This document shows, in pieces, positions 3,396 through 29,258 of a DNA stretch of 64,000 nt. The stretch lies in the sequence record MN871445.1; one strand, written 5' to 3'. How positions within the stretch are numbered: the stretch's first letter is position 1; every line of letters starts with the position of its first letter. The notes beneath the pieces were generated by a model, which saw nothing but the letters and a program-made list of their open reading frames with translations, was not told where the DNA came from and did not search any database. The position numbers and the translations under genes were made by a program.

Positions 3396-5567
3396 ATGAC
3401 TGCATCAAAATTATTGCGAATCCCTACTCACGTTAAGCGCACTAACGTCTCTCTCGAAGAACGTGAAGCTGTTGCTGAGCGCGATCCGGATATTGTCGAC
3501 ATGTCTCAAACTCCTGATGACGTTAATCCTGATGATGCGGGCCAAGCTGCAACTGCTTCTTCAGAGGCGACATCTCAGGACGGTGACGTGGCAGGCTCTG
3601 CTGATGTCGCCGAGACAAGCACTGACGCGGGTGTTGCGTCTACAGAAGCTACCGGCGACGTTGCCACTGGGGCAGAACCAGATGCCGCTGCATCTGCAGA
3701 TGACACTACGGCGAGTGCCGACGAAACCCAAACCGATGAATCCGGTACCGCTGGCGGTGACGAAGCCACCTCTGCAGCGGCTGATGTCGGTGCAACTACC
3801 GATACCGAAGCCACGCCCCCGGCCGACGATAGCGTCGTAGATAGTGGTAGCGATGCTGCTAACGCCGATCTTGACGTGCAAGCTGATATCACACCGCCTG
3901 AAGAAGCACAGACCACCGAAGCAGATACCGGTTCAGATACTGCAACCGATGCCGGTGACCTGGGTGGCGATGCAGGTATTGGGGAAGATACTGGTTCTTC
4001 CGTAGAACCAGCTGCTGAGTCCACCAACACTGATGTTGAAACCACTACGGATACAACAGATGTTGATACCACCGCATCAACAGATGAAGCTGAACCAGTT
4101 GAAAATCCGGCAGCCGACATTCCGGAAGAAGCTCTTACTTCGGCCTGGGTTCAGGGCGTAGCCGTGGATAACCACGATGACGTCACCGACCTCAAAGATG
4201 GCGAAGAAGAACTGGATGTCTATCAGCACAATGAAAATGAACTTCATGATGCTGCGACCAGTCTGGAAGAGTTACGCAACTGTTGTGTCCCAGTTGCCGT
4301 TGTTACTCACACTGAAACTGATGACCTGAGCACGCCGGTGCAAACCGAAATGGTTGCTGATATCAGTGATAAAGCTGTTGACTTACTGACGGCCAGTAGC
4401 AACCAAGTACTTTCACGCCTGGGAAGTCAATTGGACCTGCCGGCAACTACTGAATCTGCAGGTACTTCGGTTGAGCGTCTTCAGGTCACCATGGAAGCCA
4501 TCGATGGTAAGCTCAAACAGATTTGGGAAGCCATCAAGAAAATGGCTGTCGCTGCCTGGGAAGCATTTGTTAATTTTGTCAAGGGCATCTTTGACAAAGC
4601 ACAACGTATTCGCAACCAGGTGAGTGGCCTGCGTAAATTCGTTGCGCAATACAAAGGCGCTACGCCAGAAGCTACTGAATTTGAAAACAACGCCGTCTGG
4701 GCCGCATGTAGTCTGGAAGTAGGTACCCAGAAATTCGAATTCGACGCAAATAAAATCTCGCCGACATTTGAAACCTACTTGAGTGCGGCGAAACCATATC
4801 TGCTGAATGCAAGCCGTGCCCTTGCGCCGGGTCTTAACATGGTCTTCGATCGGGTTGCCGCAATCGACCCGGAAAACGAGGAAACTAAGAAAGCAATGTG
4901 GGACGCATTTGGTAATCTGATGAATCGGTATACTAAATCCGTCATTATGGTTACCAAAATGGTTGGTGGCGAAACCAAACTGGGTGACCATGAATTAGAA
5001 GGTGGTTCCCTTACTGATGGGTTGCAGCCGATTTATTCTGCCCCTGGTCTGGGTGGTGGTTTCTTGTATGTCGATGTAATGGACCCGAAAGTCAGCGTAG
5101 ATGTCGCTGCGGTTGCATTCTGGAATCGTGCAGGTGCGCGGTATGTTCGGAATCATCCGGTTGTTCCAGAAGGTGCAACAGTTCAGACTCTTTCCGTTGA
5201 ACAAATGGAAACCATGCTGGATCAGATCGACGAAGCCATGGAAACTGTGTTAGAATATCGTTCAACCTTTACGGTGTTCGAACAGCAATTAGCAAAAGGT
5301 CAGCAGGCTACCTCCAAGTTGGCAAATAAACTGGAAAATAGTAGTGAGGCCAATATTGCTATTTTCGCATCGATGAAGTTGGTGCCTAAACTGACTGGAT
5401 TCAACCAAGCCGTAATCAATGGTTTGTATTTCCAATCCAGTGCGATGCTTCAATACATCGTAGCGTCTACCAAGCAATATTCAGCCAATGAAAGCGCTGT
5501 AGATTCAACAGCGCAGGGTGTGGCCGACAAGGGTGCAGGTAAACTGCCAGCACCTGAGGCAGCATAA
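3396..5567 (+). CDS. Inner head protein, phiKZ gp93-family paralog 2, with very long acidic propeptide
   Basis: About 250 aa D/E/A/T-rich region, then ATES...VTMEAIDGKLKQIWEAIKKMAVAAWEAFVNFVKGIFD, nearly the same motif as in 1896..3323. Confidence 0.85.
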   Translation: MTASKLLRIPTHVKRTNVSLEEREAVAERDPDIVDMSQTPDDVNPDDAGQAATASSEATSQDGDVAGSADVAETSTDAGVASTEATGDVATGAEPDAAASADDTTASADETQTDESGTAGGDEATSAAADVGATTDTEATPPADDSVVDSGSDAANADLDVQADITPPEEAQTTEADTGSDTATDAGDLGGDAGIGEDTGSSVEPAAESTNTDVETTTDTTDVDTTASTDEAEPVENPAADIPEEALTSAWVQGVAVDNHDDVTDLKDGEEELDVYQHNENELHDAATSLEELRNCCVPVAVVTHTETDDLSTPVQTEMVADISDKAVDLLTASSNQVLSRLGSQLDLPATTESAGTSVERLQVTMEAIDGKLKQIWEAIKKMAVAAWEAFVNFVKGIFDKAQRIRNQVSGLRKFVAQYKGATPEATEFENNAVWAACSLEVGTQKFEFDANKISPTFETYLSAAKPYLLNASRALAPGLNMVFDRVAAIDPENEETKKAMWDAFGNLMNRYTKSVIMVTKMVGGETKLGDHELEGGSLTDGLQPIYSAPGLGGGFLYVDVMDPKVSVDVAAVAFWNRAGARYVRNHPVVPEGATVQTLSVEQMETMLDQIDEAMETVLEYRSTFTVFEQQLAKGQQATSKLANKLENSSEANIAIFASMKLVPKLTGFNQAVINGLYFQSSAMLQYIVASTKQYSANESAVDSTAQGVADKGAGKLPAPEAA

Positions 5568-5602
5568 CCTCCAGGGGAGGGCGAAAGCCCTCCCCTTTAT
5601 GC
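5562..5602 (+). terminator. Intrinsic terminator, two-tier hairpin
   Basis: AGGGGAGGGC-GAAA-GCCCTCCCCT then TTATGC, which can pair with upstream GCATAA (last codon plus stop). Confidence 0.9.
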
Positions 5603-5661
5603 CCACACCTATTCTCATCCTATGACCATTTCTTTATCAAGCGGCATTAGAGGACGACATT

Positions 5662-6954
5662 ATGACTGGGTTGGTGAACACCCCACAATCAGAATTACCG
5701 AATTCCCCGACGTCGTATGCCGAAGTTCATCAGATGGTGACTGAACTCGCGCACCAACAAAACGACATTAGCAAAAAAGACCAGCAGGTGCAAGAACACA
5801 CTCAGGTCGTTGACGAGCTTCGCAATACTGGCGACATGATATCCGCATTGGGGGCTATCGTTAAATACAATATTGATGGCAAGCCAATGTCGCCGTTCCA
5901 GTCTTCACTGATGAAAAATGCCTTATGGCATAGTGGAAGCATCAGTCAAGAAGCGTATAACAGCGATACCGTCATCTCTATGGAGTCCTTACGCAAAATC
6001 CTGGCCGACATATGGGTTGCAATTAAAAACAGCCTAAAACGTCTTTTAGAGCGTTTAATTGACTTCTTAACGACATACTACGGAATGCTAAATACCGTAG
6101 AAGATTTGGCTTTGAAATTAAAAGCCATACTCAAAGAAAATAATTGGCAGACCGTAACGGTAACCTCGTTTCCATCTAACAATGCGCGCAAAATTGCCGT
6201 TGGTGGAAAACTGAAGTCAACCTGGGTGGAAGACATCGCTGGAACATTGACGGTATTAGCGGACTCGGACAAAAATGTCATTGACGCAATTGGTGACTTT
6301 AATCTTCGCGCTACCGACCAGGTAATTAAAACATTAAAAACGGATAAACTTCCCGATTTCAATTGGGCTGTGTTATCCGGCACAATCGGTACCCTGCGGC
6401 GGACTATGACTGCCACCATATCACGATATGGCGTGACATCATACGCCAAGCCTTTTGGTATTGAAACCTATTACTGTAGTGGTGTATTACCTGGCGAATG
6501 GCAATTGGGCTGTAAACAAATTCCAATTCAAAATGCCGATAGTCAGCATGATGCTGCGCGAGCAATCATTGAGGGTATGGGTGATCAGTATTTCGTCATC
6601 CTGTCTAAAGAACAAGCAGGGCCCGATGCTTTGCCATTACCTTCCTTAAACGTCATTGAATCTGCATGCGACGATATCATCAAAGTAGTCACTACGTTGA
6701 AAGATTCTACTCGCAAACTGGATGTAGAACTCAACGGCACCTTGAAAAAATCCATTGATACAATCGATGGACTGATGCACCGCATTCAGGGAAGTACCGA
6801 AATCAAAGATCGAGAAGCGGTGGACTTCGTCATGCGGGCGACTCAAATATCCAGTAAACTTAGTCGTCCTTATTTGCAATTGCTGGGAAATATCCTACCC
6901 GCATACACTCGGGCCTTATTGCAATGTGTTCTGGTCTATCGTGATGGAGCATAA
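5662..6954 (+). CDS. Inner head protein, phiKZ gp93-family paralog 3
   Basis: ISMESLRKILADIWVAIKNSLKRLLERLIDFL motif after a propeptide; SGVLPG motif matches SNVLPG and SGILPG in other paralogs. Confidence 0.8.
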   Translation: MTGLVNTPQSELPNSPTSYAEVHQMVTELAHQQNDISKKDQQVQEHTQVVDELRNTGDMISALGAIVKYNIDGKPMSPFQSSLMKNALWHSGSISQEAYNSDTVISMESLRKILADIWVAIKNSLKRLLERLIDFLTTYYGMLNTVEDLALKLKAILKENNWQTVTVTSFPSNNARKIAVGGKLKSTWVEDIAGTLTVLADSDKNVIDAIGDFNLRATDQVIKTLKTDKLPDFNWAVLSGTIGTLRRTMTATISRYGVTSYAKPFGIETYYCSGVLPGEWQLGCKQIPIQNADSQHDAARAIIEGMGDQYFVILSKEQAGPDALPLPSLNVIESACDDIIKVVTTLKDSTRKLDVELNGTLKKSIDTIDGLMHRIQGSTEIKDREAVDFVMRATQISSKLSRPYLQLLGNILPAYTRALLQCVLVYRDGA

Positions 6955-6990
6955 ACTCAATGAGGGAGGCTAATGGCCTCCCTTTTATGC
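6949..6990 (+). terminator. Intrinsic terminator, two-tier hairpin
   Basis: AGGGAGGC-TAATG-GCCTCCCT then TTTATGC, pairing with GCATAAA at 6949. Confidence 0.85.
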
Positions 6991-6996
6991 TGAATA

Positions 6997-7255
6997 TAAA
7001 AAAATACTATTTAGGATTACAATTTGAGTACACTTGGGGATGAAACATAAAAGACCTAAGGAAACGTTCCGTGCGAAGCACTCCACGTTACTATCACTAA
7101 TTAAAAAAGATAAAATAAATATACTTAGTAAGAAAGAAAAAAGATCTTAGATTTGGGGGTTTGGGGGAGGGGTAGGAGGAGCGAAGCTCCTCCGTAGGGG
7201 AGGGCCATAAAACATGATCGTGTGGGGAAGGGAAGTAAACCCTTCCCAAATATGC
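6997..7255. other. Structured non-coding element A (GNA mini-hairpins, A-tract, G-tracts)
   Basis: No credible ORF. Two GCGAAGC mini-hairpins (7071-7081, 7175-7193), A-rich tract 7100-7142, five G-runs 7155-7204, hairpin 7225-7247 followed by AAATATGC; layout shared with 48573-48737. Confidence 0.7.
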
Positions 7256-7312
7256 TGATTAATCGTTATTCAGAATTATCGTGTGTTTAACTCTACTAAG
7301 AGGTTTACTATT

Positions 7313-7750
7313 ATGAAACATTCTATTGTCCCTACACAAGCACCTAAATTCAGTATGATGGTAGGTTCCAGATCGTTGGAGACGGGTGTCAAGCTCACCT
7401 TAGAAGGCAATGGTCGCATTGATTTCTCACCGGTAATGTCCCAGGTGGTTGCGCCGAACAATGCACTGCAATCGACGGCATATTGGTCAGAGCGCGAACC
7501 ATCAACCTACTTTCTTAGTCTAGGCCAATATTCGTGTACGCCGTGTGGAATCATCAAATTCCATGAGGGGGATGTTGAAGAACCTAATGGAACGACGGTG
7601 GAGTCTTTGCTTCATGTCGTTGAACATCGACTCGAGTACCATCAATCCGGCGAATATCCCTGTAAGGAAAATGCAGCGGCATTGAGTGCCGTACGGGCCG
7701 CTTTGGTCGCGTTACATCATCGTAGCGAAAAACAAGGAAAAGTATCATGA
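7313..7750 (+). CDS. tad1: Tad1-like (Thoeris anti-defence 1 family) immune-signal sponge, divergent
   Basis: IKFHEG...NGTTVESLLHVVEHRLEYHQSGEYPCKENAAALSAVRAALVALHHR aligns with the recalled cbTad1 core IKFQKG...[46 protein letters not shown]. ATG at 7313 after AAGAGG. Confidence 0.75.
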   Translation: MKHSIVPTQAPKFSMMVGSRSLETGVKLTLEGNGRIDFSPVMSQVVAPNNALQSTAYWSEREPSTYFLSLGQYSCTPCGIIKFHEGDVEEPNGTTVESLLHVVEHRLEYHQSGEYPCKENAAALSAVRAALVALHHRSEKQGKVS

Positions 7751-8610
7751 TTCAAGTTGTATCTGCCTTTCCTGGCTGTGGGAAGAGTTGGTTTCATCGA
7801 CAGTTTACTGATGTTCTGGATAGCGATTCCAGTGCTTTTGATAAATCGGCATTCCCACAAAACTATATCTGCCATATCCGCAATACGATGGTACGAGATA
7901 AATGTATCTTTGTTAGCAGCCACGGTATGGTCAGGACTGCCATGATTGATTCTGGAATAGAATATATCCTGGTTTACCCCAGCCACGATATCAAAGAGGA
8001 GTTCCTCGAACGGTATCGCAAGCGCGGCAGTGAACCTCAATTTATTGAATTGTTGGATAAGAACTGGGATGGCTGGATTGGGGAATGTCAGGGGCAGCAA
8101 GGCTGCGTGCACGTGGTATTGCAATCAGGCCAATATCTCGCGGACGTCATTGAGTACGACCCACTTTATCGTCGCTTCACAATTAAAGAAGATGCGACTA
8201 CGTTTACCCCACAGCCGCACAAACATAAAACGGAATACATTGCCGTAGACTTCGATGGGACAATTGTAACCAATGATTGGCCTGAGGTTGGTAAAGATAC
8301 GGGTGCAATTGCGGTGCTGAGGGATTTACTTAGCGCGGGCTGTAAGTTAATCTTACATACGGTCAGAGAAGGAAAAGAGCTTAATGAAGCATTAGCTTAT
8401 TGCGCCAAACATGGAATCGATTTTATCGGAGTTAATGAGAATCGTGAGTTTCCTCCCGGCGGCGTCATCAGAGATAAACCTTATGCGGACGTATATATCG
8501 ATGACCGGGCGATGGGGTGTCCGCTTACTCACAATCCACTCACGCATAAAGAACCTTATGTAGATTGGTTTGCGATTAGAAAACAACTGGAGAAACGAGG
8601 AGTACTATAA
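7747..8610 (+). CDS. P-loop kinase / HAD-family phosphatase fusion protein
   Basis: N-terminal Walker A (SAFPGCGKS); C-terminal HAD motifs AVDFDGT, LHTVR, KPYADVYIDDR; ATGA overlap with the upstream gene. Confidence 0.8.
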   Translation: MIQVVSAFPGCGKSWFHRQFTDVLDSDSSAFDKSAFPQNYICHIRNTMVRDKCIFVSSHGMVRTAMIDSGIEYILVYPSHDIKEEFLERYRKRGSEPQFIELLDKNWDGWIGECQGQQGCVHVVLQSGQYLADVIEYDPLYRRFTIKEDATTFTPQPHKHKTEYIAVDFDGTIVTNDWPEVGKDTGAIAVLRDLLSAGCKLILHTVREGKELNEALAYCAKHGIDFIGVNENREFPPGGVIRDKPYADVYIDDRAMGCPLTHNPLTHKEPYVDWFAIRKQLEKRGVL

Positions 8611-10154
8611 TGCCGAGTATCGGACTTAACCTCCCTGAGGGGTATGAGTTAATCTCACGCCCTGTTGCTCAGGGTATTGCTCAGCGGGTGATATCACATC
8701 TGGGAATTCAAGATAAAGTCAGTATCCTGTTTCCTGGTGATGCTGAGGTAGCGGCTCAGGCCGGCAGTACATTGGGGGAACAGAAGGAAGGGGGTCCGAA
8801 TACACGCTTTGCCAGTACTCAAAGACTTCAAGTCAGCATGAATGAACAGGTTCTGGAGGGGGAGGTTTTAGCAACCCCAACTTGGCAAGTTAACCAACCC
8901 CCCATTTTCTCCGACCCTAAACTAGGCATCGCCATGAAACCTATCTACCATTTGGTGGAAGGGGTATTGTCTTTTACTTATCGTGCCGCTGACCAGACCA
9001 GTGCAGAACAATGGAAAAATAGACTGTTACGATATATTTCCCAAAACCGCGCTGAAATGTACCATGAAATTATTTATGCGTATACCATCCCAGGCCAGTT
9101 CATTACCATCTTGGCTGAAATTCACAAGTTGCGAGAACAAATCGCACCGTATGGCGATACCGTCATTGAATATCTGCGCAACCATTTCAGTGATAGAGTA
9201 GATGTTAAAACTAACATGGCTGGTAAGGGTGCTGCGTTTGCCGTGGATGAAATTCAGAAAGGTGTCATCGGTTGGTTTGATTGGACTATCCCACCAACCC
9301 CAGAAAAAACCAGTGAAGAAAGCACGTATACCGCTACCTTTGAGTTCCATTATCAATATCAGCAGGTTACTGGGGTACATCTGAAATATCCTATTATCGT
9401 ACACCAACAGCTTTTGCCCAGTAATTTACGTCCGTTGAATTTATCCTACGAACTTAATCGCAGCTTACCGACGTATATGTCTTTAGCTAAGCAGGAATAT
9501 CAGGCGGTTAAAAAGGAAACAGACGGCTATTATGCAACGCAGGAAGGTATCCGTTATCCTGATTTTGATGAATGGGCGCCAAATCACGTGATAGCCGATC
9601 AGATTCCATTACTGACCGTAATGTTGACTATTTCTGCGGATGACCCTCGATTTCTTTTGAACATCCAAGAACTATCCCATTGGAATTTTAATCCAGATAT
9701 TCTCGAGTTTCTGCTGGCTGAACCTAAATGGGCAACATTAACCAAATTTACCCCAGTCTTAATCACGCTGTATTGTGATGGCGACAAATGCGATGACCAG
9801 ATCGTACAGTTGGATGCTTCCGGCGATGTACGTACAACCATCGATTTGGACTTAAGGCGCCAATACCACATCGTCATTAGTGCGATGTCTGATTTATCAC
9901 AGTTGAATAAAAATAACACCGATCTTTTGCGACAATACCCTAAAGCCGCCATGGTTGTGCTGTATGCCTTAGAACCTCGTTTAGAATCTTGGGGTAAATT
10001 ACCAGAAGTATTGGGTGATAAGCTTGTATCTCGCGTGGGTTGGTTGGAAGCAATCAACGTCATTAAAACAACTTCCCCTATTTTCCGTACAGCAAAATAC
10101 TACTCACGTTTTACGGTGGGGTCTTACATCCTGGCTACAGCGGAGAAAAAATAA
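8610..10154 (+). CDS. Probable virion structural protein (phiKZ-like tail/baseplate block)
   Basis: 514 aa, TAATG-coupled to the upstream gene; position between inner-head genes and the hub-like gene. Confidence 0.55.
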   Translation: MPSIGLNLPEGYELISRPVAQGIAQRVISHLGIQDKVSILFPGDAEVAAQAGSTLGEQKEGGPNTRFASTQRLQVSMNEQVLEGEVLATPTWQVNQPPIFSDPKLGIAMKPIYHLVEGVLSFTYRAADQTSAEQWKNRLLRYISQNRAEMYHEIIYAYTIPGQFITILAEIHKLREQIAPYGDTVIEYLRNHFSDRVDVKTNMAGKGAAFAVDEIQKGVIGWFDWTIPPTPEKTSEESTYTATFEFHYQYQQVTGVHLKYPIIVHQQLLPSNLRPLNLSYELNRSLPTYMSLAKQEYQAVKKETDGYYATQEGIRYPDFDEWAPNHVIADQIPLLTVMLTISADDPRFLLNIQELSHWNFNPDILEFLLAEPKWATLTKFTPVLITLYCDGDKCDDQIVQLDASGDVRTTIDLDLRRQYHIVISAMSDLSQLNKNNTDLLRQYPKAAMVVLYALEPRLESWGKLPEVLGDKLVSRVGWLEAINVIKTTSPIFRTAKYYSRFTVGSYILATAEKK

Positions 10155-26885: not shown

Positions 26886-29258
26886 ATGAACCTCCAACAT
26901 ATCGCGGACATTGCATGGCAGTATCTTGGTACTCAGCAGCTTAACGAACATCAGGCCGCGTATGGTATTTTAGCAGAAAATGGATTTAACAATCCGGCGG
27001 CATATAGCCTGGTCGATACCTGGAATGAGTTGTATAACTTCTGGCGTGCAACTCGGGCACATGAGTTCATCAACAATGATGGCGCACTGCAAGAAAATGT
27101 CAACACCACTGTGATGATGTGTTTTCTGGCGCATCAGGTGTCCAAGTATCCCAATCTTCAGCAAACGCTTACGCAACAGGCTGCCGATACTTATAACCAG
27201 TGGTTATCATTATCGACCCAGCTGGAAGCTGAGATGGACTCGTATTACCGGACACCGCAAATGCGGGGCTATCAGCAACAGCCCAACATGTACCAGACCC
27301 AACCACAACAGAATTATGTTGACCCCAGATTCCAACGTGGAATGTCGCCGGCCCAATTCGCCAATCGGCAATATTCAGGGTATCAACAGCAGGGGTATAC
27401 CCAGCAGCCGAATATGTATCAACAAACATATCAGCAGCCGACCCCCCAACAGCAGCCGGCGTATCAGCGCCCAGCGGCACAGCCTGTGCAACAACAGTCG
27501 TATGTGTCCAATAACGGGAGAACGCATCATCGGTACGGTTCTTCCCAACAACAAGCACCACAACCAACCCATCAACCTCAACCAACAGGTCAGGCTACGG
27601 TGGGTCGTAAGTATGAAGCAAAAACGGCTCAACCGGTCCAGCAAAGCCAGCCAAACAACCCGCAGTACCAACGTACCCTGACTCCACAACAACAGCAACA
27701 TGCACAGCAAATGCACGATAGCTGGCAAGTCGAAGTTGCCAGTGCCCCGACAGCTACAATGAAAGGGCGTGATTTAGCTGAGGCCCGCCACGGTGATGTG
27801 ACTTCAGGCAGTTGGGATGGCGATGTCATTTCTGGGGACCATTCGTTTGATGCCATGGCCCCACTGTTTGAAGAACGTATTAGTTCTACCAATGGTGGCG
27901 CTCGTCTGACCTACGTAAATGCTGATGGTAAACCATTTACGATTGATGATTGGCGTAAGAAACCCGATCCCGATTTCCCGTATGAACTCGGTTATGCACC
28001 ACGCACCCATCGTCGGATAATTGCGTGGGACCACAAAAAAGAATGTTACATTCAACTTGTAGAGGAGCATGGTCAAGTGGACTATGATGCACACAAACAA
28101 CTCGAGGGTAGCGCCGTCGTACGTAAACGCACCTCTGCCGAACGCGAACGCAATCCGTTCGATCCGGCTGGAGCCAAAGTAACGACACTGGGTGGTGCTA
28201 TTGAAAGACGCCAAGAAATTATTGATCGGAGAGTGGCGGCCGCACAGGAGGCCTGGGCAAAACAGGAAGCGGAAGCCGCAGAAGCTGCAGAGAACGGGAA
28301 CGCATATGTAGCCCCGGATTTAATCCCGCCAGCAGATGTTGTCGAATCTACCCCACTTCCTGAAGAAACTCAAGACGAGATCGATGCAGGTAGCGGTAGA
28401 TTAGATAATGGCGTGCTAGATGCAGGTAGTTTGAAAAATGCCTACATCAGCATTGAACACGCACTCTACGGTCTGCGCGCTGGCAACGTCCTGGCTGACC
28501 TCGACGATAACCAGGTATCTTCAACCGAATTTGTTTTCCATGAAGTAACGCCGTTCATTCTTGATTGCGGTGATTATGATTTTGTTCGCAGTCAATTAAC
28601 TGAACTTACCCCGGAAAGCAAAATCAGAACGTTGCTGGATATCCCAGTCCATCTCAAAAAGATCGCCAAATTGGTGCCTCAGGAACTCTGGACCAAATAC
28701 AACGATCAAGCAACGATCTACATCAACAGCATTTTGGCTAATGAGCTGAATCTGGAAGGCGTTAGCATCGATAACTTTGCCGATGACCTGGCGGAACTTC
28801 CGGGCTACCTCAAATCCAAATATCCTGCCGCACTGGAGGCGTTGACAAAGAACGGCGGTAAACTGTTCCGTAATCTGATGTGTATTCTGCCGGCAGTCAC
28901 CATGGAATCTTACGAGAAAATCGCTCGTAATCTCTACGGCGACCAAACTGAGCAGCTCAATGAACGTTCTGTATTCCTGGCCCGTAAAGTTGCCGTAGCT
29001 AAGGTAAAAGCATCCACAGAGCAGCTGGGTCTGTATAGTGACAGTCGTTCATGTGCGGTGACTGAAAAATCCCATCCGGAATTGTGGCATATGCTGGGTG
29101 GTATTCTGTCCCGCAACGCAGAACGCATCGAACGGGAAGAGTTTGATGGGGCTGCGCAATATCTGGTCACCTCAGATAACGCTCTGTTTACCATCCATGA
29201 AAACTGGCTGAGCGATGATGTTGACACCATTATCGTTCGTCGCCAGCGTGTTCTTTAA
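26886..29258 (+). CDS. Large hypothetical protein with Q/P/Y-rich low-complexity domain
   Basis: 790 aa; residues about 120-278 are prion-like, flanked by apparently folded regions. Confidence 0.8.
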   Translation: MNLQHIADIAWQYLGTQQLNEHQAAYGILAENGFNNPAAYSLVDTWNELYNFWRATRAHEFINNDGALQENVNTTVMMCFLAHQVSKYPNLQQTLTQQAADTYNQWLSLSTQLEAEMDSYYRTPQMRGYQQQPNMYQTQPQQNYVDPRFQRGMSPAQFANRQYSGYQQQGYTQQPNMYQQTYQQPTPQQQPAYQRPAAQPVQQQSYVSNNGRTHHRYGSSQQQAPQPTHQPQPTGQATVGRKYEAKTAQPVQQSQPNNPQYQRTLTPQQQQHAQQMHDSWQVEVASAPTATMKGRDLAEARHGDVTSGSWDGDVISGDHSFDAMAPLFEERISSTNGGARLTYVNADGKPFTIDDWRKKPDPDFPYELGYAPRTHRRIIAWDHKKECYIQLVEEHGQVDYDAHKQLEGSAVVRKRTSAERERNPFDPAGAKVTTLGGAIERRQEIIDRRVAAAQEAWAKQEAEAAEAAENGNAYVAPDLIPPADVVESTPLPEETQDEIDAGSGRLDNGVLDAGSLKNAYISIEHALYGLRAGNVLADLDDNQVSSTEFVFHEVTPFILDCGDYDFVRSQLTELTPESKIRTLLDIPVHLKKIAKLVPQELWTKYNDQATIYINSILANELNLEGVSIDNFADDLAELPGYLKSKYPAALEALTKNGGKLFRNLMCILPAVTMESYEKIARNLYGDQTEQLNERSVFLARKVAVAKVKASTEQLGLYSDSRSCAVTEKSHPELWHMLGGILSRNAERIEREEFDGAAQYLVTSDNALFTIHENWLSDDVDTIIVRRQRVL

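Follow-up and report, generated by a model that had tools for sequence, protein, structure and literature searches.

We describe here a gene encoding a divergent member of the Tad1 family, located at positions 7313..7750 (+ strand) of a 64,000-nucleotide stretch of DNA, referred to below as the window, which corresponds to bases 62001-126000 of GenBank MN871445.1 (Serratia phage KpHz_2; full record 270,429 bp). Tad1 is a phage protein that sequesters bacterial immune-signal nucleotides. The record carries no annotation and is flagged UNVERIFIED_ORG, and the phage, a "Serratia phage" by name, has Klebsiella pneumoniae as its stated host. The region is 97.9% identical to that of Klebsiella phage vB_KvM-Eowyn (genus Eowynvirus). 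A search of the literature found no publication on the Tad1-like protein of KpHz_2.

The open reading frame (ORF) is present as announced in a preliminary description of this DNA, with the C-terminus HHRSEKQGKVS quoted there. It encodes 145 residues from an ATG at 7313 to a TGA at 7748-7750, the latter forming an ATGA overlap with the start codon of the following gene. The annotation of Eowyn makes an identical choice of start codon, and a Shine-Dalgarno-like AAGAGG lies at 7298..7303 (+), 9 nt 5' of the ATG, with GAGAGG in its place in a relative whose Tad1-like protein is 79% identical. Three parts can be distinguished in the protein: a clade-specific N-terminal region with low-confidence beta strands (aa 1-63; 7313..7501, +), a Tad1 core made of the last two beta strands and the two-helix Acb2/Tad1 hairpin (aa 64-140; 7502..7732, +), which carries H110, K118, N120, S125 and R137, and a shortened tail (aa 141-145; 7733..7747, +), composed of a Gln at the position of CbTad1 R113 followed by four residues, without the lid segment. 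When the whole of MN871445.1 was scanned piecewise (2829 ORFs) with a Tad1 hidden Markov model (HMM), 7313-7750 was the sole Tad1-like ORF.

This protein belongs to the Tad1 homology family, of which it is a divergent member. Using the alignment of its clade as the query, an exhaustive HMMER search of 1.84 billion representatives (E <= 0.001) matched 1077 proteins, all of which align only to about aa 64-141. Sixty of these relatives, of typical size, were used to build a Tad1 profile and HMM, and they are bona fide members of the family since their profile covers the CbTad1 and CmTad1 chains end to end (E 1e-29); the same profile matches residues 111-226 of phiKZ gp184 (E 3e-23). The HMM of the 60 proteins recognises the window ORF and gp184 at an equal level (E 6e-26 vs 3.4e-25), and an hhalign comparison of the clade with the 60 proteins gives a probability of 99.8% (E 2e-30) over aa 64-140. 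In a phmmer search of the PDB, gp184 comes top (8Y6V chain I, E 7.6e-5), followed by CmTad1 and CbTad1 chains (E 1.5-2.7e-4), every match lying within aa 75-140. PHROG 2428, which also covers the Tad1 domain of gp184, matches the protein with an E-value of 9e-13. The homology is not confined to the hairpin, as it reaches 5' of it into the beta strands, including a Tyr conserved in 97% of the family, and the near-invariant positions N120, R137, Q111, C117 and G113 are all retained.

These results bear out the Tad1-like identity that the preliminary description had proposed from sequence motifs. The motifs themselves are found in the protein (IKF..G at aa 81-86, Q.G.Y at 111-115, ENA.AL at 119-124, and R137), with some of the quoted spacings one residue off: the protein has G-x5-LL where G-x4-LL was quoted, and AL-x5-R or AL-x2-R where AL-x4-R was quoted.

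The predicted structure is in agreement with this assignment. An AlphaFold2 single-chain model, computed from a 107-sequence alignment, has a mean predicted local distance difference test (pLDDT) score of 62.9, with values of 74-92 over aa 60-140. Strands are modelled at 26-31, 35-37, 54-58, 65-70 and 77-83, and helices at 96-111 and 118-143, the helices having a pLDDT of about 80-92 and corresponding to the Acb2/Tad1 hairpin. The strands 65-70 and 77-83 are of moderate confidence and align to the family, including its conserved Tyr. When the model was compared with the PDB by Foldseek, a check that the preliminary description had called for, all 20 significant matches were CmTad1 or CbTad1 chains (E 7e-6 to 2e-4), with the first other fold at an E-value of 1. 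These matches have a target-normalised template modelling score of 0.58-0.68 over 108-115 aligned columns and a root-mean-square deviation of 4-5 A. In the BFVD, the matches were the orthologue of Eowyn and a number of Tad1-like proteins from phages. The lack of a profile or structural match to Tad1, which the preliminary description had named as refuting its proposal, was not what we observed.

The N-terminal region was considered separately, as the preliminary description had called this half of the protein unrelated to Tad1. The exhaustive search yielded no relative of aa 1-63 outside the clade among the 1.84 billion representatives; two long repetitive matches were judged spurious, phmmer having failed to reproduce them. 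About 80 residues precede the hairpin, compared with a family median of about 46, and the roughly 34 extra residues are conserved within the clade. Relative to the 79%-identical protein, the ratio of non-synonymous to synonymous substitution rates (dN/dS) is 0.26 for aa 1-63, 0.10 for aa 64-145 and 0.18 overall, showing that aa 1-63 are coding and under purifying selection. The description thus holds as far as sequence similarity is concerned, unrelatedness as such being unproven in either direction. Several points speak for a relation: the homology starts already at aa 64, including the strand bearing the conserved Tyr; strands are modelled, albeit with low pLDDT (<50 for aa 1-51), at 26-31, 35-37 and 54-58; and Foldseek alignments with Tad1 chains, which have about 125 residues, span 108-115 columns, again with low confidence for aa 1-51. 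Taken together, the family alignment and the model suggest that the N-terminal part could be a sheet of the Tad1 type that is extended at its N-terminus and carries insertions.

The most distinctive traits of the protein lie in its pocket and tail. In CbTad1, the dimer pocket that takes up glycocyclic ADP-ribose (gcADPR) and cyclic GMP-AMP (cGAMP) is lined by F82, N92, R109 and R113, pairwise mutation of these four residues abolished the binding of both ligands, and residues 116-122 become ordered as a lid over the ligand (10.1101/2023.11.15.567273). A second site, at the threefold interface of the hexamer, is formed by R90 and T97 (R88 and T95 in CmTad1), which coordinate the phosphates of cyclic trinucleotides, and the hexamer, a trimer of dimers, is required for trinucleotide binding (10.1101/2023.11.15.567273). 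Equivalent residues, given here in CbTad1 numbering, were mapped through HMMER alignments and a family alignment of 102 relatives, conservation being expressed as column shares. In the gcADPR/dinucleotide pocket, N92 and R109 are kept, as Asn120 and Arg137. F82 is replaced by His110, in a column that is Phe in 88% and His in 6% of the family. R113, four residues after the invariant Arg (R137) and Arg in 96% of the relatives, is replaced by Gln141. The tail that follows this last column is 4 residues long vs a median of 11, so that the C-terminal lid is absent. The truncated tail reported in the preliminary description is thereby corroborated, and it involves the loss of both the second ligand-binding Arg and the lid.

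A His at the F82 column together with loss of the second Arg is seen in none of the 102 relatives. His110, the lack of an Arg at 141 and the 4-residue tail are common to all five members of the clade, down to 69% identity, and this truncated-pocket state is therefore fixed and not a sequencing artefact. At the trinucleotide site, where the family is variable at both columns, R90 corresponds to Lys118 and T97 to Ser125; these residues are chemically conservative with respect to Arg and Thr, and invariant in the clade. A basic and hydroxyl pair occurs at these columns in 9 of the 102 relatives.

The gene is embedded in a region of virion genes. Directly upstream are two phiKZ_IP (PF12699) genes for inner-body or internal head proteins (3396..6954, +), which belong to a cluster comprising, further upstream, a gp91-like gene, with three PF12699 phiKZ_IP inner-body genes in all. 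Downstream, and translationally coupled, is a gene for a 287-residue protein with a P-loop N-terminal and a HAD-like C-terminal domain (7747..8610, +). The P-loop domain matches phrog_4182 (E 2e-55), and the HAD-like domain matches phrog_1238 ("phosphoheptose isomerase", E 4e-31) and PDB 2obb (E 4e-13); the layout of this protein resembles a two-domain style of kinase plus phosphatase. It is followed by a gene for a 514-residue homologue of phiKZ gp98, a collar or tail-terminator protein in solved virions (8610..10154, +), which marks the structural module, and, 3' of it, by head-tail joining genes. The solved virion proteins that match the 514-residue protein (E 2.5e-62 to 1e-39) go by the names tail terminator gp51, collar protein gp126 and PHIKZ098; these differing names show that labels for the role of this conserved neck protein are inconsistent.

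The gene order is unchanged on the metagenomic contigs that encode the 79%-identical Tad1-like protein. In other chimalliviruses, the slot before the gp98 homologue is empty (vB_Ea277G and pPa_SNUABM_DT01), holds one unrelated ORF (Moabite and Centimanus) or is rearranged (Simmy50). Between the inner-body cluster and the gp98 homologue, chimalliviruses can hence be seen to carry nothing, an unrelated ORF of 307-358 residues, or a Tad1-like gene together with an ORF of about 287 residues. The last arrangement is found in Erwinia phage pEa_SNUABM_54, where the equally sized ORF at the place of the 287-residue gene is unrelated to the protein of the window.

A conserved non-coding region of 358 bp (6955..7312, +) separates the inner-body genes from the Tad1-like gene. 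It contains a terminator hairpin (6963-6983) followed by a T-run and TATG, as well as G-runs (7155-7172) and two further, strong hairpins (7175-7193 and 7225-7247). This leader is nearly invariant among KpHz_2, Eowyn and a contig with the 79%-identical protein; the stems of the two strong hairpins are kept across relatives while their loops differ, and its G-run motif is unique within the window. An Rfam scan of the 358 bp gave nothing above noise, and the region may be a regulatory 5' leader.

The terminator hairpin belongs to a set of about 20 genome-wide copies in which a GC-rich hairpin (stem ending CCCTCCC or similar) is directly followed by TTTTATG. In the window, these copies are located at 6963-6989, 16726, 19481 (-), 23970 and 56042, with about 15 more elsewhere in MN871445.1; they are often preceded by a conserved ACAACATAT box and usually lie 7-140 nt 5' of an ORF, and one copy stands between the inner-body gene and the Tad1-like gene. 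Their appearance is that of terminators also bearing the TATG core of phiKZ late promoters (PMC7598289). Promoter motifs were rejected as a source of expression timing, as a sigma-70 scan is uninformative for this type of phage and the 8-mers around the two TATG sites upstream of the Tad1-like gene, one next to the hairpin at 6963-6989 and one near 7251, show no enrichment.

What, then, could this protein do? The homology, the fold class of the C-terminal two thirds, the residue states, their conservation and the genomic context are established; oligomerisation, any ligand binding and any anti-defence effect are what we infer. It appears most likely that the protein is a homo-oligomer that sequesters a nucleotide signal and whose preference is changed, a mechanism to which we would give slightly better than even chances. 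A small homo-oligomer would sequester nucleotide second messengers from host signalling defences (Thoeris, CBASS and the like), which would keep the effectors of these defences from being activated. Its dimer-interface pocket is remodelled, with the Asn and the first Arg kept, the aromatic residue changed to His, the second Arg changed to Gln and the lid gone. The closed gcADPR/dinucleotide site would then be weaker or absent, and a trinucleotide-type or other ligand would be possible. A shifted preference is proposed because of this remodelling and of the Lys and Ser found at the trinucleotide-phosphate positions; the altered ligand range already put forward in the preliminary description is, in the same way, a reasonable deduction from residue changes and not a result.

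Several observations weigh against such a sponge. PF24729, the Pfam model of the Acb2/Tad1 hairpin, does not report the protein, and scans against Pfam (E up to 10), NCBIfam and PADLOC gave no match; the PF24729 model is, however, short and weak, misses most confirmed relatives as well, and only weakly matches the close homologues in precomputed annotations. The model of aa 1-51 has a pLDDT below 50. Two of the four CbTad1 pocket residues are replaced and the lid is gone, so that membership in the functional class of CbTad1-type gcADPR/dinucleotide sponges is not established, and, judging from these residues, the dinucleotide/gcADPR pocket could simply be dead. As for trinucleotides, most CmTad1 hexamer-interface positions differ (among them K96, E99 and W103, all changed to Ala), and formation of the hexamer that their binding requires does not seem assured from the sequence. 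Finally, in a survey of sponges, 19 of the 84 homologues tested, three families taken together, were inactive against seven systems (bioRxiv 10.1101/2025.08.24.671296).

An alternative is that the Tad1 fold no longer binds nucleotides and is kept for another role, either as a head assembly or structural accessory or in an interaction with a host or phage protein. Such a role, which we regard as rather unlikely, would fit with the fixation across the clade of a state in which the second Arg and the aromatic residue are lost and the lid is missing, with the divergent hexamer interface, with the structural-module context of the gene, with the ORF of pEa_SNUABM_54, which has lost other pocket positions (the equivalents of N92, F82 and Cys), and with the inactive sponge homologues that are common in screens (bioRxiv 10.1101/2025.08.24.671296). 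It is opposed by the strong purifying selection that acts on exactly the helices forming the pocket, by the retention of N120, R137, Q111, C117 and G113 and the invariance of K118 and S125, and by the Pfam, PHROG and Foldseek searches, which gave no similarity to families of structural proteins.

The genomic context is also compatible with delivery by the virion, as reported for gp184: the protein would be produced together with the head proteins and enter the capsid, its N-terminus might be shortened by the prohead protease, and it would reach the next host along with the DNA. We hold this to be equally possible as a loss of binding, and likewise on the unlikely side, its support not going beyond gene position; it concerns the route only and is compatible with a sponge function. 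The gene lies inside the head/neck module, between the inner-body and gp91-like genes and the gp98 homologue and head-tail joining genes, to which it is coupled; this synteny is kept with a relative at only 79% protein identity, and a very divergent Tad1-like ORF occupies the identical slot of pEa_SNUABM_54. gp184 itself is a protease-cleaved minor capsid protein (PMC11297242), the freed part of which is described as injected (bioRxiv 10.1101/2025.11.23.690004). The extra N-terminal residues are conserved in the clade, and the upstream hairpin, T-run and TATG recall the late-promoter core of phiKZ (PMC7598289). However, the ~110-residue N-terminal region of gp184 has no counterpart here, the similarity to gp184 being confined to the Tad1 core, and the slot before the gp98 homologue is variable or empty in other chimalliviruses, as expected for an accessory insertion. 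A promoter core of 4 nt is no evidence of timing, and the 8-mers surrounding it are not enriched.

A site for the prohead protease, whose motif is given as AXE (PMC7411985), was looked for in the N-terminal extension. The sole S-x-E there (aa 21-23) is missing from two of the four homologues, those with 79% and 69% identity, and this candidate was rejected. E31, which falls on a conserved position in the first strand of Tad1, is not a processing signal either. The label "structural protein" of the Eowyn orthologue (CAD5236112.1, in LR881104.1) was likewise set aside as virion evidence: it is a homology transfer made by Prokka with a custom database, the corresponding paper containing no mass spectrometry.

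That the protein might not be a Tad1 at all, and instead belong to another family with the PF24729 hairpin, such as Acb2, was rejected. The part detectable by single-sequence searches is mainly the hairpin, and close homologues carry only a weak PF24729 label. On the other side, no hairpin-bearing structure other than Tad1 is found by Foldseek below an E-value of 1, all 20 significant matches being Tad1, the homology extends into the beta strands with their conserved Tyr, and the profile of the relatives matches Tad1 chains over their full length.

Returning to the sponge with a changed preference, a bolder form of it can be envisaged, which we consider improbable. In the Eowynvirus clade, the Tad1 scaffold might have come to serve as a sponge for some other signal, by abandoning the closed gcADPR/dinucleotide pocket and either keeping a trinucleotide-type site at Lys118/Ser125 or building a new site with the clade-specific N-terminal 63 residues, and the protein might even be produced alongside the head proteins and carried by the virion. 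If true, such a protein could show which nucleotide signal matters in Klebsiella.

The phage context gives some weight to the question. The genome of KpHz_2 encodes a chimallin homologue (record positions 27975-29135, E 9e-21), and a nuclear shell and PhuZ genes have been described for a member of the genus Eowynvirus (PMC13757433), in agreement with the nucleus-forming phage postulated in the preliminary description. As the nucleus of jumbo phages shields their DNA, nucleotide-signalling defences are among the host systems still able to reach the phage, and the vulnerabilities that remain for a nucleus-forming phage are signalling and RNA-guided systems. Our results show that an enterobacterial lineage of chimalliviruses also carries a single Tad1-family gene. 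They correct a public "structural protein" label, which rests on homology transfer alone. In addition, as a natural variant without the lid, without the second Arg and with a His for the aromatic residue, the protein offers a ready-made comparison for the parts of Tad1 that determine ligand specificity. Publications already cover the Tad1 family, its occurrence in jumbo phages and the plastic specificity of sponges, and no new category is opened; the gene is an atypical new Tad1 member in a type of phage where the family is already documented.

Among the closest known systems are the structurally defined Thoeris anti-defence 1 sponges CbTad1 and CmTad1 (PDB 7UAV, 7UAW, 8SMD, 8KBB-8KBH), which share with the window protein the size class, the arrangement of N-terminal strands, predicted in the latter, followed by two long helices, and 21-25% identity over 108-115 aligned columns. 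The near-invariant residues, including the equivalents of N92 and R109, are retained. The window protein differs from both by a His for F82, a Gln for R113, Lys and Ser for the Arg and Thr of the cyclic-trinucleotide site, a tail of 4 residues vs about 11, about 34 additional residues ahead of the hairpin, a sheet region with insertions and most of the hexamer-interface residues. The survey of sponges mentioned above catalogued 1,587 non-redundant Tad1 homologues; the members tested inhibited CBASS and type I Thoeris, and sponge homologues within one family can differ in specificity (bioRxiv 10.1101/2025.08.24.671296).

phiKZ gp184 (8Y6V chain I) is the best single-sequence match in the PDB and has an equal score with the Tad1 HMM; like KpHz_2, phiKZ is a chimallin-encoding jumbo phage in which the gene is embedded among virion genes. 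gp184 differs in being 230 residues long, with an N-terminal region of about 110 residues before its Tad1 domain (aa 111-226), in retaining an aromatic residue where CbTad1 has F82, as well as the second Arg and a tail of 12 residues, in having Glu and Asn at the cyclic-trinucleotide positions, and in the location of its gene, which lies elsewhere in the genome and does not adjoin gp98. Its identification as Tad1 and its blocking of CBASS and Thoeris are reportedly owed to Li et al., in Nature in 2024, the primary source cited for both; the 2023 preprint of Li et al. makes no mention of phiKZ, and these points are taken here from secondary citations. In the phiKZ virion, gp184 belongs to the inner vertex-binding complex as a minor capsid protein, and the head protease cleaves it (PMC11297242). 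In one preprint, it is cited as a non-essential Tad1, the freed part of which is injected, and as the only previously known anti-defence gene of phiKZ (bioRxiv 10.1101/2025.11.23.690004), and, in another study, as blocking CBASS and Thoeris and as the only anti-defence gene known in a jumbo phage until then (PMC13282480).

The founding member of the family, Tad1 of Bacillus phage SBSphiJ7, belongs to a phage of a different type that infects a different host phylum. It is linked to the window protein by profile methods only, since tblastn gives just a weak match (E 4) over the region of the first helix, to a feature annotated as Tad1. The 131-residue ORF of Erwinia phage pEa_SNUABM_54 (MW879341.1, 9867-10262), which has no annotated function, lies in the corresponding slot, with one gene between it and the gp98 homologue downstream. 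It is Tad1-like by profile (hhalign 95%, PHROG 2428 E 1e-5, HMM E 4e-6), and neighbouring ORFs of Moabite and pEa_SNUABM_54, used as specificity controls, have probabilities below 1% against the Tad1 profile. A degenerate Tad1-like protein without direct pairwise similarity to the window protein, it retains both Arg residues and the tail but lacks the equivalents of N92, F82 and Cys. Acb2 (anti-CBASS 2), lastly, shares the sponge concept and the two-helix hairpin, grouped by Pfam in PF24729. No Acb2 chain was returned by the phmmer search of the PDB (E up to 10) or among the Foldseek matches with E <1, and the window protein differs from Acb2 in having a beta-strand N-terminal part.

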